Virus record (IMG/VR): IMGVR_UViG_3300005941_000003
Location: 181,964-245,963 of that record
Direction: 5' to 3' (one strand)
DNA: 64,000 nucleotides
The notes beneath the pieces were generated by a model. That model was given only the letters and a program-made list of their open reading frames with translations, searched no databases and was not told the origin of the DNA. The position numbers and the translations under genes are program-made. Positions 1,226 through 63,938 of the stretch are shown piece by piece. Within the stretch, counting starts at the first letter, position 1; every line of letters starts with the position of its first letter.

Positions 1226-1989
1226 TCTCTGCGTTCAATATCGTCTTCTGTTAGTTTATCTCCCATCCAAACTTCAATTACTTTAGCAGGAGTTTCTCCA
1301 ACATTTACTGCTTTGTGCCAGCATAATGCAGGTATATCAAAACTGTTTCCTTGTGGAACAATAAATGTTTGTTTGCCTTCATCATCTTCTACTGTTATTT
1401 CAATGACGCCTTCAATAACATGCCAGTGTTCACTACGATTAAAATGGCGCTGATCACTCAAAGATTTACCTGCTTCAAATTCTAGTTCTTTTACTTGCCA
1501 ACCGGGACCTTTATGTAGAACGGTATAAATGCCCCATGCACGTTCGGTCTTTGGTTTACTCCAGTTTTCAAGTATCCAAGACGAACTATTCATCTTTCGT
1601 GAACCGCCTACTTTCCAAGCAAATTCAACATCTTTATTATCGTGAAATGTTTTAAACTCTGGTACGTTTGTGTTAACGCGGTCTCCGCCATTTGCAAAGA
1701 CTACTTTCCACTTAGATCCTTTAGTTGATAGAACTTGCATAATAGCGGCACATGCAGTGCCATCATCGTCGTTGAACCCTATAACTTCATCAACCATTTC
1801 TAAGTGTTTGATAATATTTGCACGTTCCTCAAACGACATAAATGGTCTACCCTTTTTTCGAGTAAGCCAAGCGTCACTATTCACACCTACAATTAGATGG
1901 TCTCCCAACTCTTTGGCAGCTTTGAAATATTCGATATGTCCTGAATGCAGTGGGTCAAACCCACCAGTCACTAAAACTACTTTACTCAT
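1222..1989 (-). CDS. Cytidylyl/adenylyltransferase (HIGH family) fused to a mannose-6-phosphate isomerase-type cupin
   Basis: N-terminal GGFDPLHSGH; C-terminal cupin SLSDQRHFNRSEHW...WH. Confidence 0.8.
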   Translation of the reverse strand: MSKVVLVTGGFDPLHSGHIEYFKAAKELGDHLIVGVNSDAWLTRKKGRPFMSFEERANIIKHLEMVDEVIGFNDDDGTACAAIMQVLSTKGSKWKVVFANGGDRVNTNVPEFKTFHDNKDVEFAWKVGGSRKMNSSSWILENWSKPKTERAWGIYTVLHKGPGWQVKELEFEAGKSLSDQRHFNRSEHWHVIEGVIEITVEDDEGKQTFIVPQGNSFDIPALCWHKAVNVGETPAKVIEVWMGDKLTEDDIERRD

Positions 1990-3181
1990 TATTCACCTCA
2001 ACAAATGGTTTTGTACGTTCCCATAGCCATGGGTTGAATTCACCCCAATGCTCATTTCGTATTCTATTCACTGCGGCATCGGTGTTGACAAAATGTTTAA
2101 AGTCGCCTGTCTCATTTAATTCGTTCAGCATCCACTTGAATATAGAATAACCTGGGTAGTTGTCTGATATAGAATTTAAATATTCTGCTACTTCTTTTTT
2201 AACTTCGTCTGGTAGATTTCTAGGTAGCATCCAATCAGGACCATCCGCCATAACATAATGTGTCCAGCGCATTCCCTTTTGTAGTGAATAATCAATCAAC
2301 TCGTGGAACGAATTACAGTTGTAGATAGATGCAACACTATGGAAACTGATAGTGGTTTTGCTCTTAGTTGCTTTGCGAGTTTTTTCCCACTCCAAGAACC
2401 AATCAACTACTTCCTCTACTCTCTGCCAAGAACTACCTTTGCGTAGAAAATCGTTCAACTTACCATAACTGTCTACACTCAATTGCACGTTGACTTCTTT
2501 GCATTGATTTAGTAGACCGGTCAATTCTTCGTTTGGGGTAGTTGTGGTATTTGTTGCAATAAGTATCTTTAATTCAGGTAGATTACATTTCTTTAGAACA
2601 CTAATGAATTTCTCTTGCTCCATCAGAGGTTCGCCGCCGATCATTTTGATAAACTTTAGATTACTTAAATCGTAGTCTTCAATGATACTATTCTTTGCGA
2701 CAACACCACGTCTTGGTTCGCCGCCCCATCCTAGCTTTTTAGCATCTGCGTACCAGTTTGTACTTAATTCAGGTCCGCACATACGACATCTGTTATTGCA
2801 TACGTTACTCAGTGCAAGGTCGATGTTTGTTAGATAGTGATAATCTCTGTTTGAATTTTCTGCAAATTCAGCAGCATCAGGAATACCAAAGTTAATGAAA
2901 GGAGATGAAATGTCAGTACGCATACTGCTACCAGAAATTTCTTCGTCGCGATAACAGCTTGCACAACCTGGGTGCGCTTCATCGTTGCGCATCTTTTCAC
3001 GAAGATCAACCATGAAAGGGTGATTGAATGGATCAGGGTGATCAATTCTTAAATCTTCTGGTACTTCTTCTTGTCTGAAATAACAACATGGAAAAATCCC
3101 ACCATCTGGTCTAATAGCCAGATGATGGAATGGAAGTGGACATGCGTGTTTATGTTTTATTTGGAAATTTCTGTCTGCCAT
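1982..3181 (-). CDS. Radical SAM protein with N-terminal twitch-like Fe-S domain
   Basis: CNNRCRMC and GGEP; N-terminal CPLPF..PCC and CASC. Confidence 0.85.
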   Translation of the reverse strand: MADRNFQIKHKHACPLPFHHLAIRPDGGIFPCCYFRQEEVPEDLRIDHPDPFNHPFMVDLREKMRNDEAHPGCASCYRDEEISGSSMRTDISSPFINFGIPDAAEFAENSNRDYHYLTNIDLALSNVCNNRCRMCGPELSTNWYADAKKLGWGGEPRRGVVAKNSIIEDYDLSNLKFIKMIGGEPLMEQEKFISVLKKCNLPELKILIATNTTTTPNEELTGLLNQCKEVNVQLSVDSYGKLNDFLRKGSSWQRVEEVVDWFLEWEKTRKATKSKTTISFHSVASIYNCNSFHELIDYSLQKGMRWTHYVMADGPDWMLPRNLPDEVKKEVAEYLNSISDNYPGYSIFKWMLNELNETGDFKHFVNTDAAVNRIRNEHWGEFNPWLWERTKPFVEVNNE

Positions 3182-4524: not shown

Positions 4525-4552
4525 AATATAGCATGATTCGTGTGATTGTCAA
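4525..4552 (-). promoter_or_regulatory. Early promoter TTGACA-N16-TATATT with CGAATCA in spacer
   Basis: TTGACAATCACACGAATCATGCTATATT; near-identical copies at 4869 and 32241. Confidence 0.8.
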
Positions 4553-4555
4553 GAA

Positions 4556-4840
4556 TTAAAAACCAATACTTTCACCATTTGCAATCTTTTCTACATAAGA
4601 AGAACCAAGAGTGCAGAGTTTAATTTCATCGCGCTTACCGCCAGCAGCAACACATTCGTCAACCATTTTGTTTGCCGCTTCCTGCATCATACGAGTGAAG
4701 CGTTGCTGATCTGCCACAGTGAGCGAACGGAACATGTCCGCCATCGTGCTTTCAAAGTAGCCTGCAGCGTATGCATGTGAGCCGTATACTTGACGACTGG
4801 CGTCGCTGAAGTCTTTTGCGTATTCTTTAAAGTCCTGCAT
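4556..4840 (-). CDS. Small early hypothetical protein
   Basis: RBS GAGAGGA and own promoter. Confidence 0.7.
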   Translation of the reverse strand: MQDFKEYAKDFSDASRQVYGSHAYAAGYFESTMADMFRSLTVADQQRFTRMMQEAANKMVDECVAAGGKRDEIKLCTLGSSYVEKIANGESIGF

Positions 4841-4868
4841 AGTGTGTCCTCTCTCTGACTACTCTATT

Positions 4869-4896
4869 AATATAGCATGATTCGTTGTATTGTCAA
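4869..4896 (-). promoter_or_regulatory. Early promoter (repeat copy) with GANTC
   Basis: TTGACAATACAACGAATCATGCTATATT. Confidence 0.8.
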
Positions 4897-4899
4897 GAA

Positions 4900-5097
4900 T
4901 TAATCGAATGCTACCTTGACAACATTGCCATCTGGATCGAACATAGTGCTTACACGACCTTTGCATTTGCTGCTAGTCCGGCAACGCCACCAACTGTCAG
5001 CTTGGTCCTGAGTGTCAACAAATACAGAACTCCACTCAAGAACCCCACTTGGGTTCTCGGCATTTAGACGATTGTATTGTGCGCGGAGTTCCCACAT
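4900..5097 (-). CDS. Small early hypothetical protein
   Basis: 65-aa ORF behind promoter and GAGAGAG RBS. Confidence 0.6.
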   Translation of the reverse strand: MWELRAQYNRLNAENPSGVLEWSSVFVDTQDQADSWWRCRTSSKCKGRVSTMFDPDGNVVKVAFD

Positions 5098-5124
5098 GTT
5101 TAACTCTCTCTTGATTACAAGACA

Positions 5125-5153
5125 GTTATATAGTGATTCGTTTTAACTGTCAA
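5125..5153 (-). promoter_or_regulatory. Early promoter TTGACA-N17-TATAAC with GANTC
   Basis: TTGACAGTTAAAACGAATCACTATATAAC. Confidence 0.75.
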
Positions 5154-5296
5154 CTATTAAAATGGTGGATCTTCTGGTACTTTATCTTCCAACTTTCCAC
5201 TCATAATGTCCCACACACGTTGCTTTTCCATATGTTCAACATAATGAGAGCGACGACCGTCCTTGATATATGAACATTCGTGCGATTGTCAAGTAG

Positions 5297-7121: not shown

Positions 7122-8630
7122 ATGAGAATATTAGGTATTTCTGGCGCGTTGAATCATGACGCAGCCGTTTCAGTGATTGAAGATGGTAAGATACTATTTG
7201 CATCACACAGTGAACGCTACAGTAAGATCAAGAATGATGCATTGTTAAACGATGGTATCATCAATGAAGCGTTGTCATATGGTAAGCCAGACCGTATTGC
7301 TTGGTTTGAGCGACCATTAAAGAAGAAGTACCGTCAGTTTCTAGCTGGACAATACGAACTTGCATTCGCAGGAAGTGAGTGGCCTAAATGGTATTTAAAT
7401 AAAAACTTCCCGCAGTTGAATGGTATCAAGATAGACTATCAAGATCACCACTACACTCACGCCGCAAGTGGTTACTATACGAGTGATTTCGATGATGCAT
7501 GTGTTGTTGTGATAGATTCAATAGGTGAGTTTGAAACTCTTACTATATGGCATGCCGAGGGTGAGCGTATGACTAAGATTTTCTCTCAAGAATATCCACA
7601 TTCAATTGGTCTTTGGTATAGTGCAATGACACAGCGTTTGGGATTGAAACCACAAGAAGATGAATACATTCTTATGGGTATGGCAGCGTATGGGGATAGC
7701 CGTAGGTTCTTCAAAGAAATTGTAGACGAATTCATACTTGTTGAGGGTATAGGATACTCACCGGAAACATACTTCAAACACAATCTTCATCGTGGGTGTT
7801 TGTGGTGGAAGCCAGAGTTAACGAGTGAGCAAGACTTGTTCGACATTGCTGCTGGTACACAAGCAGTGTACGAATATCTATTAAAGAACATCATTGCATG
7901 GTGTGTTAGAAACATTCCAAGCAGAAATCTTGTGATGATGGGCGGCTGTGCGCTAAACTGTAGCGCAAACTCAAAGATCACATATCAATATGATAATGTG
8001 TGGATCATGCCAAATCCGGGAGATGCTGGTAGTTGTATCGGTGCGTCACAACAATACTTTGATGATAGAATCAAGTGGGAAACTCCTTATCTAGGACATG
8101 AGATTAAAGGTCTATATCCTGTACAGAAAAGTTTAGAAGCATTGCTACGCGGAGAGATTATTGGTATCGCAAATGGTCGTGCAGAGTTTGGTCCACGTGC
8201 GCTAGGTAACCGCACTCTTACGGCAGATCCACGCGGGGACGATATTAAAGATCGTATGAATGAAATCAAACGTAGACAAAAGTTCCGTCCTTTTGCTCCA
8301 ATGATTCTAGAAGAACATGTTCACGAATACTTTGATATGCCACGACACATAAACGAATCACCATATATGCAGTTTGTTGCAACATGTAGATTCCCAGAAC
8401 TGTTCCCAGCAATCATACACAAAGATGGAACATCACGCGTACAGACCGTCAATCGTGAGCAACATCCGGGTCTGTATGAACTGCTAACGAAGTTCTACGA
8501 AGCGACAGGATGTCCTATCCTAGTCAATACATCACTGAATATCAAAGGAATGCCGATAGTCAATGACGAACAAGACGCAGAAGATTTTGCGAAGCACTAT
8601 GGCATTTCAGTCTTTACATCCGACGAATAA
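7122..8630 (+). CDS. Carbamoyltransferase, NodU/CmcH (TobZ-like) family
   Basis: ILGIS..HDAA, HHYTH, GGCALNC, EFGPRALGNR, FRPFAP, NTSLN. Confidence 0.95.
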   Translation: MRILGISGALNHDAAVSVIEDGKILFASHSERYSKIKNDALLNDGIINEALSYGKPDRIAWFERPLKKKYRQFLAGQYELAFAGSEWPKWYLNKNFPQLNGIKIDYQDHHYTHAASGYYTSDFDDACVVVIDSIGEFETLTIWHAEGERMTKIFSQEYPHSIGLWYSAMTQRLGLKPQEDEYILMGMAAYGDSRRFFKEIVDEFILVEGIGYSPETYFKHNLHRGCLWWKPELTSEQDLFDIAAGTQAVYEYLLKNIIAWCVRNIPSRNLVMMGGCALNCSANSKITYQYDNVWIMPNPGDAGSCIGASQQYFDDRIKWETPYLGHEIKGLYPVQKSLEALLRGEIIGIANGRAEFGPRALGNRTLTADPRGDDIKDRMNEIKRRQKFRPFAPMILEEHVHEYFDMPRHINESPYMQFVATCRFPELFPAIIHKDGTSRVQTVNREQHPGLYELLTKFYEATGCPILVNTSLNIKGMPIVNDEQDAEDFAKHYGISVFTSDE

Positions 8631-8641
8631 TCTGTTATAAT
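8613..8641 (+). promoter_or_regulatory. Sigma70-type promoter TTTACA-N17-TGnTATAAT
   Basis: Consensus match upstream of the 8670 ORF. Confidence 0.6.
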
Positions 8642-8669
8642 ACAAGAAAATGAAACTATAAGGACAACT

Positions 8670-11486
8670 ATGGCCTACGACGGATTTTACCTAACATACA
8701 AAAACGATAGAGAGACGAATGATCGTTTCGACCGCGTTTCTGGGGATTACCCAAACTTCAAACTAGTAAAAATCAATCTTGAAGACATGAGCAATCCAAA
8801 GATTGTTGACGCCGTGATGAAGATTGCGTCACTTGTGAATACTAAACACTTTTGGGTTATTGATCCAGAGGTAGTACCAGGCGACGACTTTGATTTTAGT
8901 TACACTGCGACCGAATACGATGAAATGTATACGCAGCTTTGGAATGCAGATGAACGTGATATGTTCAAGCAAGTAGTAGGTGTAAAACTTTTCAACCGTC
9001 TTGATGTTCTAAACAAAGGCAGAGAGTATGTAGAAGATGCATACTATATGCGCGACGAATTTAAACTACATGAAAAAACTTTAACATATTCTCCAACAAA
9101 AGAGACGTATGATATTTTCTATTGGAAACGTAACTTTGGTAACGAGAACTTAAAGAAACTAAAAGCACGACATGATAATATCAATATTGTCATGGGTGAA
9201 AACATTATGCAGGTTCATGAAAAGTGTCGTGCGGTAGCGCGTACTGATTTCTACTATCTTGTATATCCTGATACAGATGTGAACGAAGATTTTGATTTCA
9301 GTTACAATTTCGAATTTGGATTAGATAAAGAAAATCAAAAAGTTGCGCTATGGCAAAAAGTAAATCCAGTAACCGGATATGCTAGAGAGTATCACGGCAT
9401 TGGTCTATTCCCGACACAACGTGACATGTTTGATGAAACCGCGTACAAAAAGTTTTACTTCAAAAAGGATGGGGTGTATGATGTACATCCTGCGTCGAAA
9501 GACATACCGTTTGAGCAACATCGTGTTGGTAGAATTGCAGAAATGGATGCAATGCTTGTACATGCGGTTGACACTGAAATGTTTTGGATGATTGATGAAC
9601 AAGTAGAACCTTATCAAGACTTAATTGATGAATTCTATCCTTTCAGTTATGACAGAGATAAGATTCATAACTTTAATGTAAAACTACCTAATGGTAAGAT
9701 TGTAAGAAACGGTGTGCGTCTTATCCCTAAAAACTATGATATGGATTTGCAGAAAGACATGGACATGGTAATGGGTGAAATGCAACCATTTGATATCGTA
9801 CACGGCAGATCAGTTGAGGAATGTATATCTAAATCAAAAACTCACAGATTTTGGATGGTCAACCCAGACCTAGATACAGTACAAGATATCAATAAACTAA
9901 TCGATGAAATTGGAGTTCCTGATCTATATGATATGGACTCCACTCAGATTTGGTCTTTTGCAGATATCAAAGGTGAGCGTGTTGGCTATGGCGGTCTTGC
10001 TCTATCAAGCAAGGCATATAACAAATATAATCTTTTACTAAAAGACGATATTATGATGAAGATACCAGAAGTGACACGTATCAAAGTTATTAAAACTCGT
10101 GATCCGTATCAAGCATATGTGCAAGCGGCAGGTGAAACATTCTATTGGGTAGTTGACACAATTGTTGAACTATTGGATGATTTCAAGTTCGACTACTATC
10201 CTGATATATTCAATATCGAAAACGTATTTGCATTTGCAAACGAATCTACAAACGAAACGACCACAGGTACATCTGGTGTGTATCTAGTTCACAGACCACA
10301 TCTATCTATCTATGAGTTATCAGAACGCGACTTCTCTTTTGATAGATTTAAAAATATGATATTCATTGATAAACCTGCAAGTAAAACAGTAGGCTATCCT
10401 GTATTTTATTTTGATGAAGGTCTATACAAAGAGAACACTGATTACTATAAGCAGTATGACTTTGTTGAAATTATAGACGCCACTGACGTTGGAGCAGCAT
10501 ACTTAAAAGCAGCAGAACTAGCACCTATGGGGTATTTCTGGGCGATAGATAATGATGTCAGAGTTAAAGACATGAACTTTGACCGCTCGTTCTATATTGA
10601 CAAGTTTCATAAATCACACTTCCACATGTGGCCAAAGGAAAACCCATACACTGGATTCGTACATCAATTTGGTGGATTGAAACTTATACCAGCAGAAGCA
10701 ATCAAAGAACTCAAACCAGACGCAGACAAAATTCGTAAGATGAATTTCAAAAACAAGCGTCCAGTAAGAGCAAAGACCCCACCATCTGCGGATATTCCGT
10801 ATGATGTTGTGTTCCTAAGTTACAACGAACCTTTTGCAGATGCTAATTACGAGAAACTATTACAGCGTGTACCAAATGCAAAACGCGTTCACGGTGTAAA
10901 GGGTATCTTTAACGCACACAAACAAGCAGCGGAGTTAGCCGATACACGTATGTTCTATGTTGTTGATGCGGACGCGATACTGTTAGATGAATTTAATATT
11001 GAATACATGCCAACGATTTGGGACGAGGATATCGTGCATACTTGGAAGTCTAAGAACCCAATTAACGACTTGATCTATGGTTATGGTGGACTAAAATTAT
11101 TCCCAACAAAACTTTTACGTGAAGCAACAGATTGGCATATCGACTTTACAACGTCTATCAGCGAAAAATTTAAACCAATGCCAACAGCAGCGAACTACAC
11201 TGCATTCAATACAGATCCCTTTAACACATGGAAGTCGGCATTCCGTGAATGTACTAAACTAGCGTCAAGTATTATTCAGCGAAGCAAAGTTGATGAAAAC
11301 AAAGAGCGTCTAGATATTTGGTGTAACGTCGGATCAGACAGACCATTCGGTGAAGACGCCATCAACGGCGCACGTGATGGTAGAAAGTTTGGCATTGCAA
11401 ATGCAGATAATCCAGATGAACTATCAAAGATTAACGACTTTGAATGGTTGAAAGCAACATTTGAGGAAAAATACAATGGTAAGTGA
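8670..11486 (+). CDS. 938-aa protein of tandem GT-A-like (glycosyltransferase-like) repeats
   Basis: Repeated FWVID/FYYLV/FWMID/FWMVN/FYWVVD/FWAID/FYVVDAD segments each followed by GxxLxP-like motifs; DxD (DAD) in the last unit. Confidence 0.6.
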   Translation: MAYDGFYLTYKNDRETNDRFDRVSGDYPNFKLVKINLEDMSNPKIVDAVMKIASLVNTKHFWVIDPEVVPGDDFDFSYTATEYDEMYTQLWNADERDMFKQVVGVKLFNRLDVLNKGREYVEDAYYMRDEFKLHEKTLTYSPTKETYDIFYWKRNFGNENLKKLKARHDNINIVMGENIMQVHEKCRAVARTDFYYLVYPDTDVNEDFDFSYNFEFGLDKENQKVALWQKVNPVTGYAREYHGIGLFPTQRDMFDETAYKKFYFKKDGVYDVHPASKDIPFEQHRVGRIAEMDAMLVHAVDTEMFWMIDEQVEPYQDLIDEFYPFSYDRDKIHNFNVKLPNGKIVRNGVRLIPKNYDMDLQKDMDMVMGEMQPFDIVHGRSVEECISKSKTHRFWMVNPDLDTVQDINKLIDEIGVPDLYDMDSTQIWSFADIKGERVGYGGLALSSKAYNKYNLLLKDDIMMKIPEVTRIKVIKTRDPYQAYVQAAGETFYWVVDTIVELLDDFKFDYYPDIFNIENVFAFANESTNETTTGTSGVYLVHRPHLSIYELSERDFSFDRFKNMIFIDKPASKTVGYPVFYFDEGLYKENTDYYKQYDFVEIIDATDVGAAYLKAAELAPMGYFWAIDNDVRVKDMNFDRSFYIDKFHKSHFHMWPKENPYTGFVHQFGGLKLIPAEAIKELKPDADKIRKMNFKNKRPVRAKTPPSADIPYDVVFLSYNEPFADANYEKLLQRVPNAKRVHGVKGIFNAHKQAAELADTRMFYVVDADAILLDEFNIEYMPTIWDEDIVHTWKSKNPINDLIYGYGGLKLFPTKLLREATDWHIDFTTSISEKFKPMPTAANYTAFNTDPFNTWKSAFRECTKLASSIIQRSKVDENKERLDIWCNVGSDRPFGEDAINGARDGRKFGIANADNPDELSKINDFEWLKATFEEKYNGK

Positions 11487-12429
11487 TATTCGCGCACGCC
11501 GCGCAGCAAGAGCAAATAAAAAGACTATTAAATCTAACGAAGAATTGTATGCGTCATTTGATGACACATCATTTCAAGATGAAATAGAATATACTACAGG
11601 TCCAGCGGTTGAAGAAGTAGTCAACGATGACACTTTAATGCTAAAAAATGCAATGAATAACGCCGGTGAAAACATTGTACCATATGATTACGTCAGAATG
11701 GCAAACACTTATTCTAAGATTAACGTTGAACAACAGTTGGGCAGCTATAGAAATGCTATGGAATTTTTAGCACACATTCAGCTTGCAGAGAATGATACTA
11801 TTGTTAAACGTTTGCAAGATTTGATTTACAACTATCCAAACTTTGATGTAAGTAGTTTTGTAAACACATCCGAAGCAAAGCTATACTCATGGGTTGTTAG
11901 TACAATGCGACATACACTTGGAAGAAAATATCTTGGTGCAGTTTATGTACTAGGTGGTGGTATCGGCATTCTGCCGGCAATGTTGCTTGATGCTGAAATG
12001 AACATCGAAACTATCAGAAACTTCGATATCAACGGTGCGTGTCAATTTATTGCAGATGAAATGATGCAACGGGAAGTATTAGCAGACTGGAAGTTTAAAT
12101 CCAGTACACAAGATATGTATGATATCGATTACGCTAAACATATCTTTATTACTAGATTACAGAACGGTGTTTTAAGCGCGCCATTTAGTGAAATACCCGG
12201 TACTATTATTAATACAAACGTAAGCCATTTGCATCATCCGATGGATTGGTACAACATGTTGCCTGACATGCGCAGAGTTATTATAGTAGGCGAAACCGAT
12301 CCTAGCTTACCAAACCCATTCCCGAATTCACAAACGTTCAATAAAAAATTCCCAATGTCGTTTGAAATCTATACTGGTGTTCTTACTGTCGGTGACAAGC
12401 AATACTATATGAAAATAGGTCACAAATAA
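11476..12429 (+). CDS. Class I SAM-methyltransferase-like protein (paralog of next gene)
   Basis: VYVLGGGIG, NFDIN, INTNVSH; ATG at 11476 preferred. Confidence 0.6.
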   Translation: MVSDIRARRAARANKKTIKSNEELYASFDDTSFQDEIEYTTGPAVEEVVNDDTLMLKNAMNNAGENIVPYDYVRMANTYSKINVEQQLGSYRNAMEFLAHIQLAENDTIVKRLQDLIYNYPNFDVSSFVNTSEAKLYSWVVSTMRHTLGRKYLGAVYVLGGGIGILPAMLLDAEMNIETIRNFDINGACQFIADEMMQREVLADWKFKSSTQDMYDIDYAKHIFITRLQNGVLSAPFSEIPGTIINTNVSHLHHPMDWYNMLPDMRRVIIVGETDPSLPNPFPNSQTFNKKFPMSFEIYTGVLTVGDKQYYMKIGHK

Positions 12430-12432
12430 AAT

Positions 12433-13428
12433 ATGAATGCATCTGATCTAATCAACCGTTATGCAATGTTATACGGTGACAAGTTCCCAACTATACGGGA
12501 ACTTGAACGTGCAATAAACTCAAGCGAACTGTCAAGTGTGTTTAAGCTAGTAGCAGATGCTACATCCTCAGAAGAAAAAGCACAATTGATTAACGATTTG
12601 CGTAACATAACAATTGAACGTCCAAACATACATTTACTTTTCAGACTTATGGAAGCAATTGATCCAGACAATGAAAAGATAGAATTGTTGCGACATAACA
12701 TTGTATTGAAATCTAAGATACACGAAACTATTGACGAAGTGACTATGGGACAATACTTGATTCCATCTGGTATCAGACGACTAACCAGTAAGTTTGATGG
12801 TCCTGCACTTACTGATGCTCTTAGTCAAGGACAGATTGAAAGTAAACTGTGGCTTGTTAATACTGTTGCAGAACTAGACTTGGACTTGGGAAAGATGGTA
12901 TATGTCTGTGCAGGTTGGTACGGTGTTCTAGCAGCGTTGATGTTTGAACGTATATCAAATCGCTTTGGTAAAGTATACAGCTTTGATATTGATCCAAGCA
13001 CAGAGAACCCAGCCGATCAGTTGAATAAAGAGTATGTTGAAGTTAGCAGTAGGTTCAAAGCAATCGTAAAAGATATTCATGAACTTACGTATAAGAATGA
13101 AATACACGATGTAATTTATTACAAGTATCACACCGAACAGTCTTATGAAATCAATATGACTGAGGTTGAAGCAGACGATGTTACTTGTGTAATCAATACG
13201 TCCTGTGAACACGTTGAGAACTTTGAAGAATGGTGGGATAATATTCCAAAAGGTATGCGTGTGATTATGCAGAACAACAACTTTGTAGAACATGACGATC
13301 ACACTGTGGTAAATACAATCAAAAGTGAACAGCGGTGGGTAGACAAACTAAACGTTTCGAAGTTACTATATCGTGGAACACTATCTCTCCCCAAATATAA
13401 TCGCTTCATGGTAATGGGAATAAAATAA
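12433..13428 (+). CDS. Class I SAM-dependent methyltransferase
   Basis: GQIESKLWL, VCAGWYG, SFDID, INTSCEH. Confidence 0.7.
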   Translation: MNASDLINRYAMLYGDKFPTIRELERAINSSELSSVFKLVADATSSEEKAQLINDLRNITIERPNIHLLFRLMEAIDPDNEKIELLRHNIVLKSKIHETIDEVTMGQYLIPSGIRRLTSKFDGPALTDALSQGQIESKLWLVNTVAELDLDLGKMVYVCAGWYGVLAALMFERISNRFGKVYSFDIDPSTENPADQLNKEYVEVSSRFKAIVKDIHELTYKNEIHDVIYYKYHTEQSYEINMTEVEADDVTCVINTSCEHVENFEEWWDNIPKGMRVIMQNNNFVEHDDHTVVNTIKSEQRWVDKLNVSKLLYRGTLSLPKYNRFMVMGIK

Positions 13429-14525
13429 TGATTTACGGACACAATGGATACAAAGATGTGCGCGTAGTACACTTAGAAATTACAGAAAAATGTCAGGCAA
13501 CTTGTCCTATGTGTGACAGAAATCAGAACGGCGGCGCAGACAATCCAAATTTGGGATTACATGAACTAAAACTTGATGATATCAAGCAGATCATGCATCC
13601 AGAATTTGTTCAACAACTTGATCGTATTTACATGTGCGGTAACTTTGGTGATCCTATTGTAGCAACCGATACTCTTGAAGTATTCGATTACTTTCGTTCA
13701 CAGAAGAAAGAATTGACTCTTGGTATGAATACGAATGGCGGCGCAAAGAAACCAGAATGGTGGGCTGAACTTGCAAAAGTATTAGGTAACTGGAGTTATG
13801 TAAAGTTTTCGTTTGATGGTTTGGGAGATACTAACCATATGTATCGTCAAGGTGTTAACTGGGATATTGCGATTGAAAATGCACAAGCGTTTATAGATGC
13901 TGGCGGCAAAGCACATTGGGATTATTTGATATTTGAACATAACGAACACCAAGTAGAAAAAGCCAGAGCAATGAGTGAAGCCATGGGGTTTCAAAAGTTT
14001 ATTCCAAAGAAGACAGGTCGTTTCTTTTCGACTATGAGAGTAGCAGGTAAAGACACCCACCAAGCAGTTAATCGCAAGGGCGAAGAAAAGCAATTACTTT
14101 CAAAACCAAAAGAAGTGAAGTATCAAAACAAAGAGATTGGTAAGATTGAAGAACTAACATCAAAGTATGGTTCTTTGGAAAAATACTTTGACAATGTTGA
14201 GATATCATGTAAAGTTGCAGCAGAGAAGAATATGTATCTAAGTGCAGAAGGGTTGGTTCTTCCGTGCTGTTGGGTCGCAGGTAACATGTATAAGTGGTGG
14301 CAGAAGCCGGGTGAAAATCAAGTGTGGGAACTAATTCAACAAAGTGGCGGCAAAGATGTATTCGATGCAAAGAAACACGGCATTGCTGGTGTAATGAACA
14401 ATGAATATTTTTCTTATCGACTAGAGGAATCTTGGAACAAACCAAATACACATGCAGGCAAGCCGATGGTATGTTCGCAAAAATGTGGTAAAGAGTTTGA
14501 TGCATTTGCAGCACAATTTAAATAA
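13428..14525 (+). CDS. Radical SAM protein with C-terminal SPASM/twitch-like Cys cluster
   Basis: CQATCPMC, GNFGDP, C-terminal C..PCC..CSQKC. Confidence 0.9.
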   Translation: MIYGHNGYKDVRVVHLEITEKCQATCPMCDRNQNGGADNPNLGLHELKLDDIKQIMHPEFVQQLDRIYMCGNFGDPIVATDTLEVFDYFRSQKKELTLGMNTNGGAKKPEWWAELAKVLGNWSYVKFSFDGLGDTNHMYRQGVNWDIAIENAQAFIDAGGKAHWDYLIFEHNEHQVEKARAMSEAMGFQKFIPKKTGRFFSTMRVAGKDTHQAVNRKGEEKQLLSKPKEVKYQNKEIGKIEELTSKYGSLEKYFDNVEISCKVAAEKNMYLSAEGLVLPCCWVAGNMYKWWQKPGENQVWELIQQSGGKDVFDAKKHGIAGVMNNEYFSYRLEESWNKPNTHAGKPMVCSQKCGKEFDAFAAQFK

Positions 14526-14559
14526 TAAATAAGTGCAGATATAATAAAGGCGAATATTA

Positions 14560-15990
14560 ATGACAAAATATAAAGGTATCAACGGAATGGAGGATCTACC
14601 ATCTCCGACATTCTGTATTCTTCCATGGGTGCATCTGAGTACAAGACCTGACGGATCAATGCGAGTGTGTTGTACAGCTAACGCAAGTAGTGTGGGTCCA
14701 ACAAATGATAAAGAACATGGAGGACAAGTAGGTATTCTTAAAGACGAAGAAGGTCGCCCTAACAACCTAAACGTTAGTGACTTTAAGTCTAGTTGGAATA
14801 GTTCCTATATGAAAAACGTGCGTAAGCAAATGCTAAACGGTGAGCAACCTCCTAGCTGCATCAAATGTTATAAAGAGGAAGCAGCAGGTCACAATTCTAA
14901 GCGTATGTGGGAAACACACTATTGGAGTCAACGAACAGATGTTGAGCAACTAGTAGCAGATACCGATGAAGACGGAAGTGTACCACCACAGCTTGCATAT
15001 ATTGATTTGCGTTTCGGTACAAAATGTCAGCTTGCATGTGTCATGTGTTCGCCGCATGATAGTTCTGGTTGGATTAAAGATCATAGTAAGATTTTTCCAC
15101 TTGTCAAGAACGAATCGCTAAAAGAAACAATGCAGTGGAAAGATAAAGGTTCTACTAACGGTAGTTCCTACAACTGGCATAAACAGAACCCAGTATTTTG
15201 GGAACAGTTTTATGAACAGATCCCTAACATGCAACAGCTATACTTTGCTGGCGGAGAAGCACTTATCATAGAAGAACACTACGAAATTCTAGAAGAATGC
15301 ATCCGTCAAGGACATGCAAAGAACTTGGAACTTCGTTATAACTCTAACGCAGTTGAATGGCGTGAAGACTTGTTTGAACTGTGGTCTCATTTTAAACTTG
15401 TACGTTTCCATTATTCAGTAGATAGCATTCATGAAATGAACGACTACATACGTTACCCAAGTGAGTGGAAACGCACAGAAGAAGTATTCAGAATACTTGA
15501 TAACACAGAGGATCACGTAGAGGTCACAGTGGCGTGTGCAGTACAAGCATTGAACATTTACTACCTACCAGACTTTATCAAGTGGAAACTTGAACAAGGG
15601 TTTAAGAAGATCAACATGTGGCCATTCGGCGCAGGTGGTGTGAACTATCACTTTGTATATCACCCACCGCATTTGAATGTAAAAGTACTCCCAGAATGGT
15701 TCAAGGCAGAAACTCGTAAGAAGTATGAAGAATTTTATCCTTGGTGGAAAGCAAACTGGGAGAAAGGCGTCCCAGAATGGCACAAAGGTAAAGTGACTTA
15801 TGAACAATGGGAACAAGCAGGATATGGACTAAAGCGTCTTGAAGGTATGTTGCAGTTTATGGAAAGTGAGGACTGGAGCAATCGTCTTCCCGAAATGAAA
15901 GAGTACCTAGCTCTATGTGATCGCCAACGTAATGTAAGTTTCAGTGCGACATTCCCAGAAATGGCAGACATATTTAAGGATGTAGAATAA
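14560..15990 (+). CDS. Radical SAM protein with N-terminal twitch-like domain
   Basis: FCILPW..VCC, CIKC, CQLACVMC, FAGGE. Confidence 0.9.
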   Translation: MTKYKGINGMEDLPSPTFCILPWVHLSTRPDGSMRVCCTANASSVGPTNDKEHGGQVGILKDEEGRPNNLNVSDFKSSWNSSYMKNVRKQMLNGEQPPSCIKCYKEEAAGHNSKRMWETHYWSQRTDVEQLVADTDEDGSVPPQLAYIDLRFGTKCQLACVMCSPHDSSGWIKDHSKIFPLVKNESLKETMQWKDKGSTNGSSYNWHKQNPVFWEQFYEQIPNMQQLYFAGGEALIIEEHYEILEECIRQGHAKNLELRYNSNAVEWREDLFELWSHFKLVRFHYSVDSIHEMNDYIRYPSEWKRTEEVFRILDNTEDHVEVTVACAVQALNIYYLPDFIKWKLEQGFKKINMWPFGAGGVNYHFVYHPPHLNVKVLPEWFKAETRKKYEEFYPWWKANWEKGVPEWHKGKVTYEQWEQAGYGLKRLEGMLQFMESEDWSNRLPEMKEYLALCDRQRNVSFSATFPEMADIFKDVE

Positions 15991-16850: not shown

Positions 16851-16882
16851 AATAAATACGAATATAATTCTAAAGGCATACC

Positions 16883-17731: not shown

Positions 17732-18816
17732 TGTCAATAATGAATAGAATTGATAAAATAGAACTTGAGATAACTAGCGATTGTAATGCTCTGTGTCCCG
17801 GGTGCGCTAGAACGCAACATTTGGATAAAATAACAGTGCAAGATTTTGTTCTTGAAGATTTGAAGCGTATATTACCTACAAGAGAATATATTGATGGGAA
17901 GATATTCAAATTCTGTGGTGTTCTGGGTGATCCTGCTGCAAACGTAGAATGTCTTCCAATGGTAAAATATCTAGTGGAGAATGGAGGTTGGTGCCAGTTG
18001 AGTACAAATGGTGGAATTCAACCTGCTGCTTGGTGGAGAGAGTTGGGTGAACTGTCAGCTAGAACAAATAGTGTTGACGTTTCATTTTGTATTGATGGCC
18101 ACGAAGAAACAAACCACATCTATCGTGTTGGTACAAAATTTAGTACAATAGATAGAAACATTCAGGCATATAGTGACGGTGGTAACGGTATTGCATCTGC
18201 GACTTGGATTTATATTGTTTTTGATCACAACGAACATGAACTAGATAAAGCGAGAGAACACGCAGAAAGACTTGGATTCAAGTTTGCAACTCGTACAGGT
18301 ATGCGCAACAGCTATCACAACTGGGTTTCTGTCACTAAAAAGAAAGATAAAGAAACCAAGAAGATTGTAGAGGAAGTTAAGACCATTACAACAACTGGTG
18401 CGAAGGAACACTCAAAGAAAAAAGAAGTTGAAAAGATTGATCAATTCATTAAAGCCTACAGTAAAGGTAAAGAGATAGATCAAGAAAAGAAACTAGAAAT
18501 GATTAAGAGTATCACCTGCAAGATGATACACGAAGCAGAGATATTCATTGCAGCAGATCAAACAGTATGGCCTTGCTGTTTCTTACATGATAGCGCAGTA
18601 AAAAATCAAGATGCAATTAACGATAAACTTGCACAGTTTGGTGATAACTGGAATAGTCTAAAGCATCATACACTTGAAGAAATACTGTCCCACGTTTGGT
18701 TTAGACAATTGATAAGACTAAGTTGGGATCCAGAACATGAAATGCATTTGAAACGTTGCGTAAGAAGTTGTGCATCTAATAAAGCATATCAAAACGAAAT
18801 AAATTATGAATCTTGA
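17731..18816 (+). CDS. Radical SAM protein, paralog of 13428-14525
   Basis: CNALCPGC, GVLGDP, FDHNEH, PCC; ATG 17731 overlaps upstream TAA. Confidence 0.9.
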   Translation: MSIMNRIDKIELEITSDCNALCPGCARTQHLDKITVQDFVLEDLKRILPTREYIDGKIFKFCGVLGDPAANVECLPMVKYLVENGGWCQLSTNGGIQPAAWWRELGELSARTNSVDVSFCIDGHEETNHIYRVGTKFSTIDRNIQAYSDGGNGIASATWIYIVFDHNEHELDKAREHAERLGFKFATRTGMRNSYHNWVSVTKKKDKETKKIVEEVKTITTTGAKEHSKKKEVEKIDQFIKAYSKGKEIDQEKKLEMIKSITCKMIHEAEIFIAADQTVWPCCFLHDSAVKNQDAINDKLAQFGDNWNSLKHHTLEEILSHVWFRQLIRLSWDPEHEMHLKRCVRSCASNKAYQNEINYES

Positions 18817-18841
18817 CATTTCAAGAACAATCGCGTATAAT
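18813..18841 (+). promoter_or_regulatory. Perfect sigma70 promoter TTGACA-N17-TATAAT, directly preceded by GAATC
   Basis: TTGACATTTCAAGAACAATCGCGTATAAT. Confidence 0.75.
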
Positions 18842-18863
18842 AGAGACTAAAGAGAGATTATTA

Positions 18864-20282: not shown

Positions 20283-20285
20283 ATC

Positions 20286-21293: not shown

Positions 21294-21296
21294 TAG

Positions 21297-29994: not shown

Positions 29995-30024
29995 ATGATT
30001 CGTCCTTTCAGTCATTACTCTATT

Positions 30025-30052
30025 AATATAGCAGAGGATGCGGATATGTCAA
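30025..30052 (-). promoter_or_regulatory. Early promoter TTGACA-N16-TATATT (no GANTC in spacer)
   Basis: TTGACATATCCGCATCCTCTGCTATATT followed by AATAGAGTA as in the other copies. Confidence 0.75.
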
Positions 30053-31949: not shown

Positions 31950-31978
31950 GTTATACTGTGATTCGTTGATTCTGTCAA
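31950..31978 (-). promoter_or_regulatory. Early promoter with two GANTC sites
   Basis: TTGACAGAATCAACGAATCACAGTATAAC. Confidence 0.8.
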
Positions 31979-32240: not shown

Positions 32241-32268
32241 AATATAGCATGATTCGCTGTATTGTCAA
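32241..32268 (-). promoter_or_regulatory. Early promoter (repeat copy) with GANTC
   Basis: TTGACAATACAGCGAATCATGCTATATT. Confidence 0.8.
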
Positions 32269-51536: not shown

Positions 51537-51567
51537 AAAAAAGGGAACTCTGAATCGAGTTCCCTTT
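51537..51567 (-). terminator. Hairpin with T-tract (terminator-like) in the leader of the replication operon
   Basis: AAGGGAACTC-GATTCA-GAGTTCCCTT followed by TTTT; loop contains GANTC. Confidence 0.65.
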
Positions 51568-51596
51568 AATATAGCATACTACGAGTCGAGTGTCAA
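51568..51596 (-). promoter_or_regulatory. Early promoter TTGACA-N17-TATATT with GACTC in spacer
   Basis: TTGACACTCGACTCGTAGTATGCTATATT. Confidence 0.7.
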
Positions 51597-61282: not shown

Positions 61283-61357
61283 TGGTAGCCCGTAGGGGAA
61301 TCGAACCCCTCTTTCTAGGTTGAAAACCTAGCGTCCTAACCGATAGACGAACGGGCC
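61283..61357 (-). tRNA. tRNA-Glu(TTC)
   Basis: Cloverleaf, CTAGG-TTTTCAA-CCTAG, GTTCGA, encoded CCA. Confidence 0.93.
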
Positions 61358-61429
61358 ATAAAAGATATACTATAACTGTTATCACTTTCCACAAACGGTA
61401 CCGGTATTTGTCATAGTATATCTTATTAA

Positions 61430-61504
61430 TGGCGGACTGTACGGGAATCGAACCCGTCTCCCTCGCGTGACAGGCGAGAATTCTAACCGATAAACCAACA
61501 GTCC
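61430..61504 (-). tRNA. tRNA-Asp(GTC)
   Basis: CTCGC-CTGTCAC-GCGAG, G73, CCA. Confidence 0.93.
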
Positions 61505-61513
61505 TTTATTTAA

Positions 61514-61540
61514 TGCTCTAACCAACTGAGCTACAACCGC
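61514..61540 (-). pseudogene. Orphan tRNA 5' fragment (acceptor strand and D-arm)
   Basis: GCGGTTGTAGCTCAGTTGGTTAGAGCA then abrupt AT-rich sequence. Confidence 0.7.
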
Positions 61541-61549
61541 AATTAAAAA

Positions 61550-61626
<77 letters not shown>

Positions 61627-61766
61627 GTGTTTAAAAATTTAGAATGTCTTGGGAAGTTTCGGTGATACGCACTTCATACTCTAAGTAAGGTTACGTCACA
61701 TAAATGTAGTTTAAATGTTAGTCTCTCCTAACAGTCACGCCGTCAACTGACGTTTGGAAACTTTAA

Positions 61767-62027
61767 TTATACACGCTTTGCTGTATATTGGAACACACCA
61801 TAATTTAATGGCGCGCCGAATTTCTTTCTTGCTTTCGCAAGTGCTGCTTCTTCGTTTGCTTCAATAACTGAACCTAGATTTTCAACACCAGCAGTGATGT
61901 TAAATGTAAACATTGGCGCAGCCTCTGCTTCGACAGTTTTTGTAATTGTTTTTTTACGTGTAGATACGTTTTTAGTAGGAGCCGCTTTCGCCGACACTCT
62001 TTTTGCTAAACCTGTACGCTTGATCAT
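61767..62027 (-). CDS. Small basic hypothetical protein (86 aa)
   Basis: ATG 62027, GGGAGA RBS, late-promoter motif at 62056; K/R-rich N-terminus. Confidence 0.65.
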   Translation of the reverse strand: MIKRTGLAKRVSAKAAPTKNVSTRKKTITKTVEAEAAPMFTFNITAGVENLGSVIEANEEAALAKARKKFGAPLNYGVFQYTAKRV

Positions 62028-62081
62028 GACTTTCTCCCATAAAGAACTTATACGGTATTTATCTGATTTGAGAAAGTGAAA

Positions 62082-62157
62082 TGGTGGGAGATAAGAGACT
62101 CGAACTCCTGACATTCTCGGTGTAAACGAGACGCTCTACCAACTGAGCTAATCTCCC
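62082..62157 (-). tRNA. tRNA-Val(TAC)
   Basis: TCTCG-TTTACAC-CGAGA, CCA. Confidence 0.93.
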
Positions 62158-62235
62158 TAAAGCAGTGACTTTTGTGATTGTTTCAACGGGAAGTATGTTA
62201 CCCGAATGGCATAGTCAAATCATATGCTAGGAATT

Positions 62236-62310
62236 TGGAGCGGGCGATGAGATTCGAACTCACGACCCTCACCTTGGCAAGGTGACGCTCTACCACTGAG
62301 CTACGCCCGC
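62236..62310 (-). tRNA. tRNA-Gly(GCC)
   Basis: TCACC-TTGCCAA-GGTGA, U73, CCA. Confidence 0.95.
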
Positions 62311-62327
62311 TTATACGTTTATTTATA

Positions 62328-63068
62328 CTATTCTTTCTTTTTAATCAATGATATGATCATTCCTGCTAAATCTGGGAAAGGATAGGTTGCCAAATACGGT
62401 TTTTCGTGATGAATTGCATGATAACCATCGCCTCCTGCAATAAATGCAAGTAATATGTTGTCTTTCGGTCCATTTTCATTGTGTAAAAGAGAATTCACTA
62501 GTGAACCCATACTTAACGCAAGAAACGGAGGGAAAAAGTATAAAGCATAAAGCAACTTAGGATCAATCAATGAAACTATTGCAATATGAAAAAGTATAAT
62601 ATATACATAGTATGTATGAAAGAATACTATACCTTTTTCTGATTTAAGTTTTTCAGATTCTTCGGAGATAGCCACACCCTGTGGGTAATCAAACCATGAT
62701 ATAAAAAATACTTTTAAAATACCTTTATACGTTGGTGAATGTGGATCATATTGTGTATCTGAGTATTTGTGATGCGCTAGATGCATTCTTCTCCACTCTA
62801 ATACACTACCGATAGATAATACTGTTGTTAAGTAACATAAAACATAGTGCCAAAAGATGTTTAGTTTAAAACTTCTATGGCTGAAATATCTATGGTGACC
62901 TACAATTTGACCAATTATAGCTAACACATAGCCGACTAAAAGACTGTATACCCATTGTTCTAATGTTAAAAAATAAAAAGAAAATGGTAAACTTAGTACC
63001 ATAGCATATTGAAACCAGCCATGTCTAGTATATGTAGTTTCTTTTGTGAACGGCAAGCGATACTTCAT
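62328..63068 (-). CDS. Membrane fatty-acid desaturase (delta-9-like)
   Basis: His boxes HHRYFSH, HLAHH, HAIHH; DPHSP; TM helices. Confidence 0.9.
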   Translation of the reverse strand: MKYRLPFTKETTYTRHGWFQYAMVLSLPFSFYFLTLEQWVYSLLVGYVLAIIGQIVGHHRYFSHRSFKLNIFWHYVLCYLTTVLSIGSVLEWRRMHLAHHKYSDTQYDPHSPTYKGILKVFFISWFDYPQGVAISEESEKLKSEKGIVFFHTYYVYIILFHIAIVSLIDPKLLYALYFFPPFLALSMGSLVNSLLHNENGPKDNILLAFIAGGDGYHAIHHEKPYLATYPFPDLAGMIISLIKKKE

Positions 63069-63087
63069 ACAATTTCCAGTATATGTT

Positions 63088-63161
63088 TGGTGGAGAATAC
63101 GAGAATCGAACTCGTGATTCTAGAATGCAAATCTAGCGTGATCCCGCTTCACCAATTCCCC
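63088..63161 (-). tRNA. tRNA-Ala(TGC)
   Basis: CTAGA-TTTGCAT-TCTAG, G3:U70 pair, CCA. Confidence 0.9.
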
Positions 63162-63261
63162 ACTTTTCTGAAATTTGCCTTTCTATTAAAGGCGTAACTT
63201 CATTTTTATATTTACTGTGAACCATTTCATGATGATTTGGACACAGAGGTATTAAATTTTT
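63162..63261 (-). pseudogene. C-terminal remnant of an HNH endonuclease gene
   Basis: Spacer translates to KNLIPLCPNHHEMVHSKYKNEVTPLIERQISEK with no start codon for the N-terminal part. Confidence 0.7.
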
Positions 63262-63346
63262 TGGTGCGGATAGAGGGACTTGAACCCCCACGAGTTACCC
63301 CGCTAGAACCTAAATCTAGTGCGTCTACCAATTTCGCCATATCCGC
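63262..63346 (-). tRNA. tRNA-Leu(TAG)
   Basis: CTAGA-TTTAGGT-TCTAG, long variable arm, CCA. Confidence 0.95.
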
Positions 63347-63356
63347 ATAAGAAGAA

Positions 63357-63474
63357 TGGTGCCCTCACACGGACTCGAACCGCGGACCTGATGATTACGA
63401 AAACACACCTTGTGAACCTATCGTTATCGCGTGTGCTTTCAAATCAACTGCTCTACCAACTGAGCTATAAGGGC
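63357..63474 (-). tRNA. tRNA-Thr (TGT or CGT) interrupted by a 42-nt hairpin in the anticodon loop (63399-63440)
   Basis: GCCCTTA acceptor, D-arm, GTTCGA T-arm and ACCA intact; removing the insert restores GTTGA-TTTGTAA-TCATC. Confidence 0.85.
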
Positions 63475-63543
63475 ATTATCTTCGTATATAATTATTTAGC
63501 ATTTAGAACGAAAAGTTGTTCCTAATACGCTAAAATTTAAATT

Positions 63544-63736
63544 TTATCTATACGATCTACCTTTACCTATGTTTTTGTTTTTATAGGTTTCCGTCTGACT
63601 GTGACAATTTGGGCAAATTAATCGTAAGTTTTCAGGTGTATTGTTTTTGTGATTGCCATCAATATGATCGCATTCTAAAACGATTGGTTTACCCTGCCAT
63701 TCGCTTATACCACAACATTCACATGAATAACCTCGT
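63544..63736 (-). pseudogene. N-terminally truncated HNH endonuclease
   Basis: CECCG..W....LECDHIDGNHKNN.PENLRLICPNCHSQT; no credible start; fused to a tRNA 5' half. Confidence 0.8.
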
Positions 63737-63762
63737 TGCTCTACCAACTGAGCTATAAGGGC
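63737..63762 (-). repeat. 26-nt exact duplicate of the tRNA-Thr 5' half (other copy 63449-63474)
   Basis: GCCCTTATAGCTCAGTTGGTAGAGCA at both sites. Confidence 0.9.
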
Positions 63763-63767
63763 CAATT

Positions 63768-63857
63768 TGGCGGAGAGGGTGGGATTTGAACCCACGGTAG
63801 ACTTTCGCCTACGCCGGTTTTCAAGACCGGTGCAATCAACCACTCTGCCACCCCTCC
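63768..63857 (-). tRNA. tRNA-Ser(TGA)
   Basis: CCGGT-CTTGAAA-ACCGG, long variable arm, G73, CCA. Confidence 0.95.
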
Positions 63858-63862
63858 AATAT

Positions 63863-63938
63863 TGGCTCCCAGAGACGGGCTCGAACCGCCGACCCAATGA
63901 TTAACAGTCATTTGCTCTACCGACTGAGCTATCTGGGA
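63863..63938 (-). tRNA. tRNA-Asn(GTT)
   Basis: AATGA-CTGTTAA-TCATT, G73, CCA. Confidence 0.95.

Follow-up and report, generated by a model that had tools for sequence, protein, structure and literature searches.

Why do several strong promoters of an uncultured marine jumbo phage carry the same GANTC-containing word at one fixed distance from the -10 element, and does this word tie phage gene expression to the GcrA/CcrM epigenetic cell-cycle machinery of an alphaproteobacterial host? The question arose from an earlier note on five promoters (4525, 4869, 5125, 31950 and 32241), which reported that CGAATCA is present in each with GAATC exactly 4 nt upstream of the -10 hexamer despite a spacer of 16 or 17 nt, that the 31950 copy has two sites, that the replication promoter at 51568 has GACTC and that the 18813 promoter is preceded by GAATC. 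From this, the note inferred that early phage transcription may depend on host methylation state or GcrA, and that this points to an alphaproteobacterial host.

The phage genome

The window, i.e. the whole 64,000-nt stretch of DNA analysed here, represents bases 181964-245963 of a 245,963-bp IMG/VR viral record. A second record of 342,181 bp was shown to be the same phage at 99.999% identity, is rated 92% complete and was used as the reference genome. The genome has a GC content of 39% and encodes a family-B DNA polymerase, a T4-like capsid protein, 28 tRNA genes and about 470 ORFs. The phage is an uncultured jumbo myovirus-like phage of the broad Rak2/PA5oct/Atu_ph07 group. It was found only in marine and estuarine metagenomes, and no near-identical DNA was found in isolate phages.

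Identification of box promoters

Inspection of the window confirmed the observation of the earlier note for all five named promoters, and the signal proved stronger than had been described. CGAATCA lies on the minus strand at 4534-4540, 4878-4884, 5134-5140, 31959-31965 and 32250-32256, in each case with TTGACA 6 or 7 nt upstream and a TATA-type -10 exactly 4 nt downstream. The promoters fall into two classes. Class A reads TTGACA, 6 variable bases, CGAATCATGC, TATATT (16-nt spacer), followed by a conserved leader down to the ribosome site, while class B reads TTGACA, 7 bases, CGAATCAC, 2 bases, TATAAC (17-nt spacer). The features of the window are as follows.

4525..4552 (-): class A box promoter; -35 TTGACA 4552-4547, box CGAATCA 4540-4534, TGC plus -10 TATATT 4530-4525; drives the 91-aa ORF 4494-4219
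4869..4896 (-): class A box promoter; -35 4896-4891, box 4884-4878, -10 TATATT 4874-4869; drives the 94-aa ORF 4840-4556
5125..5153 (-): class B box promoter; -35 5153-5148, 17-nt spacer, box 5140-5134, -10 TATAAC 5130-5125; drives the 65-aa ORF 5097-4900
31950..31978 (-): class B box promoter with two GAATC; -35 31978-31973, extra GAATC 31972-31968, box 31965-31959, -10 TATAAC 31955-31950; drives the 375-aa CobS-like ATPase 31905-30778
32241..32268 (-): class A box promoter; -35 32268-32263, box 32256-32250, -10 TATATT 32246-32241; drives the 78-aa ORF 32211-31975
5265..5292 (-): natural box-minus variant; TTGACA 5292-5287, CGAATG (not GANTC) 5280-5275, -10-like TATATC 5270-5265, upstream of a 24-codon ORF
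29996..30052 (-): class A-type promoter without the spacer box; TTGACA 30052-30047, -10 30030-30025, with CGAATCA at 30002-29996, between the ribosome site and the ATG of the 453-aa gene
51568..51596 (-): sigma-70-like promoter with GACTC at 51587-51583, followed at once by a terminator-like hairpin
18808..18841 (+): consensus promoter; TTGACA 18813-18818, TATAAT 18836-18841, with GAATC at 18808-18812
61283..63938 (-): array of 9 phage tRNA genes, part of the set of 28

In the whole genome, 24 promoters were identified with a perfect TTGACA, N6 or N7, CGAATC, N4 and TATA, all on one strand and 20 to 50 nt upstream of start codons, whereas base composition predicts about 0.1 copies of TTGACA-N6/7-CGAATC and nine comparison phages have 0 or 1. 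The pattern was absent in Atu_ph07, Phosso, Vibrio 2.275.O, Yersinia Yen9-04, PA5oct, GAP32 and XbC2, and a single orthologous GAATC-N4 promoter was present in two roseophages, representing only a weak precedent. Among sigma-70-like promoter candidates, 24 have GANTC starting exactly 9 nt before the -10 hexamer, and no other offset exceeds 4.

The two further sites of the earlier note were not upheld. GACTC in the 51596 promoter lies 9 nt before the -10, and GAATC at 18808-18812 lies just upstream of the -35, outside the published GcrA positions. Both are off the shared position and are compatible with chance; the former is probably not part of the system and the latter is probably chance.

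Conservation of the box

When the 24 promoters were aligned on the box, positions -22 to -17 (CGAATC) were invariant in 24 of 24, position -23 was shown to be a purine and -16 to be A in 20, while positions -29 to -24 were close to random. A scan of IMG/VR in which only the -35, the -10 and the leader were fixed returned the box in the true relatives, one of these being a CGATTC variant that keeps GANTC. In the flanks of related IMG/VR contigs, 24 further distinct box promoters were found with different neighbouring bases, 23 as CGAATC and 1 as CGATTC. The box is therefore under selection and is not a relic of duplication. The alternative that the promoters are recent copies of one cassette, with a functionless box conserved only by descent, draws on the long cassette shared by class A promoters from the -35 to the ribosome site. 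However, this explanation is close to excluded by the position-specific conservation, by the retention of the box in diverged relatives and by the finding that two promoter classes differing in spacer length, -10 and leader share the box at the same distance from the -10.

Correspondence with published GcrA sites

The published consensus of GcrA is TGATTCG, more broadly YGAKTCK (Haakonsen 2015), and the GcrA DNA-binding domain was crystallised on TGATTCG (Wu 2018). On the template strand, 20 of the 24 phage boxes read TGATTCG, 3 read CGATTCG and 1 reads AGATTCG. Sites in the direct GcrA regulon were reported as 'narrowly centered around -20', or at +2 to +30 (Haakonsen 2015), while upstream sites bound by a monomer were placed at -20 +/- 1 or -30 +/- 2 in the -35/-10 spacer (Wu 2023), with +5 to +30 as the downstream range. 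As GAATC ends 4 nt before the -10 hexamer, it lies at -21 to -17 if the hexamer is at -12 to -7. The start site (a G in 22 of 24) is only predicted; RNA contigs from metatranscriptomes covered only part of one gene from relatives and gave no 5' ends, and the agreement with -20 +/- 1 is thus left undecided. The GcrA-RNA polymerase cryo-EM scaffold reads TTGACA-N6-CG(m6A)ATC-N5-TATAAT on the non-template strand, and the phage box, starting 7 nt after the -35, has the same orientation and the same distance from the -35. The box has no dyad or repeat partner, consistent with a monomeric reader such as GcrA.

In the 30052 promoter, which lacks the spacer box, CGAATCA lies at about +18 to +24, inside the downstream window of GcrA, and two diverged relatives keep this copy although their spacers differ. 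Only 8 of the 24 box promoters have T at -7, the others reading TATAAC, TATAAA or TATACA, whereas box-less promoters in the same genome almost all end in T. This would suit a cofactor that binds sigma region 2 and promotes opening (Haakonsen 2015). These -10 elements also resemble the Caulobacter GCtANAWC and the Sinorhizobium CTATAT consensus, a resemblance regarded as a lead only, as class B promoters of relatives mostly read TATAGT.

These findings also bear on the principal rival explanation, in which the box is the site of a different sequence-specific factor, i.e. a phage-encoded activator of a middle-gene class, a repressor that shuts off early genes or a host factor other than GcrA. 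Identity with the GcrA word would then be coincidence, and the host need not be an alphaproteobacterium. Conservation beyond GANTC would be expected of any protein site, the weak -10 elements point to an activator without indicating which one, and most genes behind the box promoters encode small proteins of unknown function that could include such a factor. Conversely, a random conserved 7-mer equals TGATTCG in either orientation about once in 8000 cases, and this explanation requires a coincidence in word, place and orientation. The -35 is retained, unlike in sigma-appropriation systems. No MotA (PF09114) or AsiA (PF09010) homologue was matched in the 92%-complete genome, although these searches had no positive control and so do not settle whether the phage encodes them. 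CtrA boxes (TTAA-N7-TTAA) were not enriched, and only 8 copies of the T4-type late motif TATAAATA lie upstream of genes, so that it does not define a class here.

Distribution of GANTC across the genome

A count of GANTC genome-wide against promoters, which the earlier note had put forward as a check, showed that the signal is positional and that the raw-count idea is wrong. CGAATCA alone is not enriched in the window (9 found, 10 expected), and GANTC is about two-fold depleted overall (113 against 225 expected in the window; 657 against 1207 in the genome). Coding DNA was found to contain 586 GANTC against 1139 expected from composition, while non-coding DNA contains 71 against 68. Compared with shuffles that keep protein sequence and codon usage, genes have 590 against 817 (z = -10), representing the strongest depletion among nine palindromic words tested. 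All four variants are depleted (0.63-0.78), while fifteen one-mismatch neighbours lie at 0.89-1.35. The target of selection is therefore the degenerate word GANTC, which is what a GANTC-specific enzyme sees, and not just the 7-mer; this word is selected against in genes but kept in promoters. Non-coding DNA, representing 6% of the genome, holds 35 of the 160 YGAKTCK sites.

This is the bias described for CcrM-bearing alphaproteobacteria, in which GANTC is at least two-fold under-represented overall and relatively enriched between genes, the pattern being attenuated in other proteobacteria (Gonzalez 2014). A different factor reading the 7-mer does not explain why GAGTC and GACTC, which are not in the box, are also purged from genes. 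However, the bias is not universal among phages of such hosts, with observed/expected values of 1.11 in Phosso, 0.75 in Atu_ph07, and 0.71 and 0.58 in roseophages V10 and MD18, compared with 0.76-1.02 in five gammaproteobacterial phages. Atu_ph07 and Phosso show no box, no positional peak and no non-coding enrichment.

GANTC depletion could also result from a HinfI-type restriction system. In a second rival explanation, considered unlikely, the site is methylation-dependent but GcrA-independent: an orphan or restriction-linked GANTC methylase of the host would modify the spacer, m6A would tune RNA polymerase binding directly or through another reader, and depletion elsewhere would reflect restriction avoidance. 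The GANTC-specific depletion in genes and the absence of a phage methylase are compatible with this view, and GANTC systems occur outside alphaproteobacteria, as exemplified by HinfI and the Helicobacter M.HpyAIV. Nevertheless, it does not explain the fixed orientation, nor the flanking C (invariant) and A (20 of 24) that make the GcrA 7-mer, and a phage under GANTC restriction would not be expected to keep 24 or more sites. The tRNA-His type and the closest relatives, described below, point instead to alphaproteobacteria.

Clues to the host

To explore the identity of the host, phage relatives, tRNA genes and bacterial assemblies were examined. The best DNA polymerase matches are Sinorhizobium phage Phosso (49%) and Agrobacterium phage Atu_ph07 (46%), ahead of Vibrio and Yersinia phages (42-44%). 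The helicase shows Phosso at 60% against Pseudomonas PA5oct at 53%, and of 45 proteins shared with four reference phages, 41 are closest to Phosso or Atu_ph07. Conversely, the major capsid protein is as close to PA5oct as to Phosso. Relatives of the SleB-type hydrolase have mixed hosts, with roseophages prominent but not decisive.

The phage tRNA-His, located outside the window at L071:11025-11100 (-), has T at -1 (no templated G-1), a U1.G72 wobble, A73 and a 9-nt D-loop. A related contig keeps these features through a compensatory change at pair 7:66, and the phage has no HisRS, so a host enzyme must charge this tRNA. Bacterial tRNA-His carries G-1 and C73, except in a subgroup of alphaproteobacteria that has no G-1 and has A73, G1.U72 and a 9-nt D-loop, this subgroup being the Rhodobacteraceae/Rhizobiales/Caulobacterales/Hyphomonadaceae clade plus most SAR11. 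Three of four phages of such hosts (Atu_ph07, Ruegeria phage V10 and Phaeobacter phage MD18) carry the type without G-1, while Phosso carries the standard type despite its Sinorhizobium host, and the only gammaproteobacterial phage with a tRNA-His (XbC2) has a templated G at -1. The marker therefore leans towards an alphaproteobacterial host but is imperfect, and U1.G72 differs from the canonical G1.U72. The U15/G48 trait of tRNA-Glu, reported as specific to the same clade, was rejected as a marker, as it also occurs in the Xanthomonas phage XbC2.

Other approaches did not identify a host. The class A pattern had no hit in the bacterial assemblies searched, a looser pattern gave chance hits across all phyla, and the Rhodobacteraceae hit was shown to be an ArsR operator. 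Gene composition, a thymidylate synthase look-up and BLAST of tRNA-His against phages were uninformative. GcrA and CcrM are reported as conserved in nearly all alphaproteobacteria, and promoters of this kind require a cell encoding both, i.e. an alphaproteobacterium outside Rickettsiales. With the closest isolates, tRNA-His and the GANTC bias on one side, and the box-less relatives, the capsid protein and U1.G72 on the other, an alphaproteobacterial host is considered likely, although the evidence does not decide the matter.

A search of the genome for gcrA and ccrM homologues, also suggested in the earlier note, returned no GcrA (PF07750) and no CcrM-family methylase (PF01555) in the 92%-complete genome or in seven related contigs. 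Methylation of phage DNA would therefore depend on a host enzyme that in the model species is present only briefly, CcrM acting only late in the cell cycle. How and when the boxes would become methylated is thus not known, representing a difficulty for a GcrA/CcrM model, yet the same feature is what would make the box a sensor or a timer.

Genes controlled by box promoters

The box promoters drive small proteins without known families, the CobS-like ATPase, an AAA ATPase followed by a UvsW-like helicase, the phosphatase and kinase parts of polynucleotide kinase-phosphatase, a SleB-type hydrolase and an FG-GAP protein with a peptidoglycan-binding domain. None lies in the structural-gene region. 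This looks like an early or middle class, but timing was not examined, including the 'early' expression assumed in the earlier note.

Interpretation

The interpretation offered by the earlier note is partly supported. The explanation favoured here, with moderate confidence, is that these are sigma-70 promoters carrying a single, oriented binding site for the host cofactor GcrA (template strand TGATTCG, a GANTC site methylated by CcrM), centred about 19-20 bp upstream of the start site. In this model, the host RNA polymerase-sigma-70-GcrA holoenzyme would bind the perfect -35, the GcrA DNA-binding domain would dock on the methylated box on the face opposite the polymerase, and its sigma-region-2 contact would help open a -10 that is often imperfect. 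About 24 phage transcription units, encoding small unknown proteins and replication and repair genes, would then fire only where GcrA is present and the phage DNA carries m6A at GANTC, coupling phage expression to the S-phase and methylation state of the host. The anatomy of the promoters, its conservation, the statistics and the match to published GcrA sites are demonstrated by the present analysis, whereas host class, methylation, GcrA binding, start site and timing are inferred; neither methylation of the sites nor dependence of activity on GcrA was measured. Recognition of the box by another, perhaps phage-encoded, factor is regarded as possible but less likely; it would explain why relatives with proven alphaproteobacterial hosts lack the box.

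A more far-reaching reading, advanced only tentatively, is that a lytic jumbo phage without its own methylase or GcrA uses the CcrM mark and GcrA of its host as a combined sensor and timer. The box promoters would fire only on methylated phage DNA in S-phase cells that contain GcrA and would fall silent as unmethylated copies accumulate during phage replication, while the genome-wide purge of GANTC would keep the scarce methylase and GcrA focused on the promoter sites. This would be the first phage regulon run by a host epigenetic cell-cycle module, and would give a sequence-only host marker for a whole family of uncultured marine jumbo phages.

If the favoured reading holds, a phage has copied the architecture of its host's cell-cycle promoters and would make its own early or replication genes depend on host DNA methylation and an S-phase sigma cofactor, representing a new way for a virus to sense host physiology and a simple way to switch off a gene class as new, unmethylated genomes accumulate. 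While GcrA boxes in host promoters are known, full-text literature searches found no paper on phage promoters with GANTC or GcrA boxes. The motif may predict alphaproteobacterial hosts for uncultured marine jumbo phages, and the natural promoter variants (box present, degenerate or moved downstream) provide a compact set for testing how GcrA works, with the box-minus variant at 5265..5292 useful as a built-in mutant control.

Comparison with known systems

The closest system is represented by the GcrA-activated, CcrM-methylated sigma-70 promoters of Caulobacter crescentus with the box upstream of the start, the type in the GcrA-TACU cryo-EM structure (PcsM). Shared features are the sigma-70 elements (in all 24 phage promoters a perfect TTGACA, a 16-17 nt spacer and TATA at -12 to -9), a single non-palindromic TGATTCG/YGAKTCK site in the spacer, with the position subject to the predicted start site, the consensus on the template strand and a box starting 7 nt after TTGACA. 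The phage promoters differ in that they form a family of 24 or more near-identical sites in a phage genome, that the box is 4, not 5, nt from the -10, and that the context is AT-rich with a perfect TTGACA and a TG-extended -10.

The GANTC distribution of CcrM-bearing alphaproteobacterial genomes (Gonzalez et al. 2014) is similar in its about two-fold under-representation overall, depletion in coding sequence and relative enrichment in intergenic DNA, but the present case is a phage genome.

Phage T4 middle promoters (MotA box plus AsiA sigma appropriation) likewise represent a phage promoter class defined by an extra conserved box upstream of a sigma-70 -10, driving replication and nucleotide-metabolism genes. 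The MotA box, however, replaces the -35 at about -30 and needs the phage proteins MotA and AsiA, whereas here the -35 is a perfect TTGACA and the box lies at -22 to -16.

Finally, in methylation-sensitive phage promoters that read host Dam (GATC), such as Mu mom and P1 cre, host adenine methylation at a site in or near a phage promoter sets promoter activity, linking phage expression to the replication or methylation state of its DNA. The methylase and word differ (Dam and GATC in gammaproteobacteria), the effect works by blocking a repressor or by direct polymerase effects rather than through a sigma cofactor, and those cases involve single promoters, not a regulon.

Leader and promoter-associated sequences

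Further sequence elements associated with promoters and their transcripts were located at the following positions:
window 4830-4870 and all box promoters (positions +1 to +15), conserved initial transcribed sequence
window 4658-4852, part of the 94-aa gene matched by metatranscriptome contigs
window 51540-51596 (-), promoter followed by a hairpin

The conserved initial transcribed sequence reads G-T-A-(A/G)-T-C-A and continues as a purine-rich run to the ribosome site, with its TCA located exactly 22 nt downstream of the TCA of the box in both promoter classes. This element is not a GANTC site, and could represent a start-site or leader element, or a second contact. Marine metatranscriptome contigs from three studies were shown to match part of the 94-aa gene at about 98-99% identity, yet run on into unrelated flanking sequence, the gene being a mobile or mosaic module shared with other phages. 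At window 51540-51596, a consensus-like promoter (TTGACA, 17-nt spacer, TATATT) is followed only 4 nt after the -10 by a GC-rich hairpin and a T run, with GATTC in the loop, which could be an attenuator or, alternatively, the terminator of the gene upstream.

A radical-SAM island and tRNA genes

Additional gene content of the phage includes:
window 1982-3181 (-) and 7122-25055 (+), island with radical-SAM/SPASM proteins
L071:12737-12811 (-) (G001 132737-132811, outside the window), predicted tRNA with anticodon CTA
L071:11025-11100 (-) (G001 131025-131100), tRNA-His

Here, G001 is the reference genome of the phage and L071 a locus thereof. The island encompasses a carbamoyltransferase (7122-8630) and at least seven radical-SAM/SPASM proteins, mixed with large unknown proteins such as the 938-aa ORF at 8670-11486. 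Such an island is unusual for a phage and may represent a DNA-hypermodification or natural-product pathway.

Within the second tRNA cluster, ARAGORN calls a tRNA with anticodon CTA (labelled Pyl), i.e. an amber-suppressor-type tRNA; read-through of TAG in phage genes was not examined. The phage tRNA-His was shown to lack G-1 and to possess A73, a 9-nt D-loop and an unusual U1.G72 pair. These features are kept in a relative (contig L161) through a compensatory change at 7:66, while the phage encodes no HisRS.

Related promoters in other sequences

Promoters resembling those of this phage were observed at:
L315:4236-4262 (+), a contig binned in a MAG
Ruegeria phage V10 at 90110 (+) (locus L188)
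Phaeobacter phage MD18 at 89704 (-) (locus L196)

L315, a 6-kb, 41% GC contig binned in a MAG named Alphaproteobacteria bacterium UBA2723, carries a phage-like box promoter (TTGACA, N7, CGAATCA, TGT, TATAAA, ribosome site, ATG), as well as one protein with 31% identity to a protein of this phage, and may be a binned phage fragment. Furthermore, the two roseophages V10 and MD18 share one orthologous promoter (TTGACA, N8, GAATC, N4, TAGAA), in which the bases flanking GAATC differ between them, representing a possible precedent for a GANTC site at this position in phages of Rhodobacteraceae.
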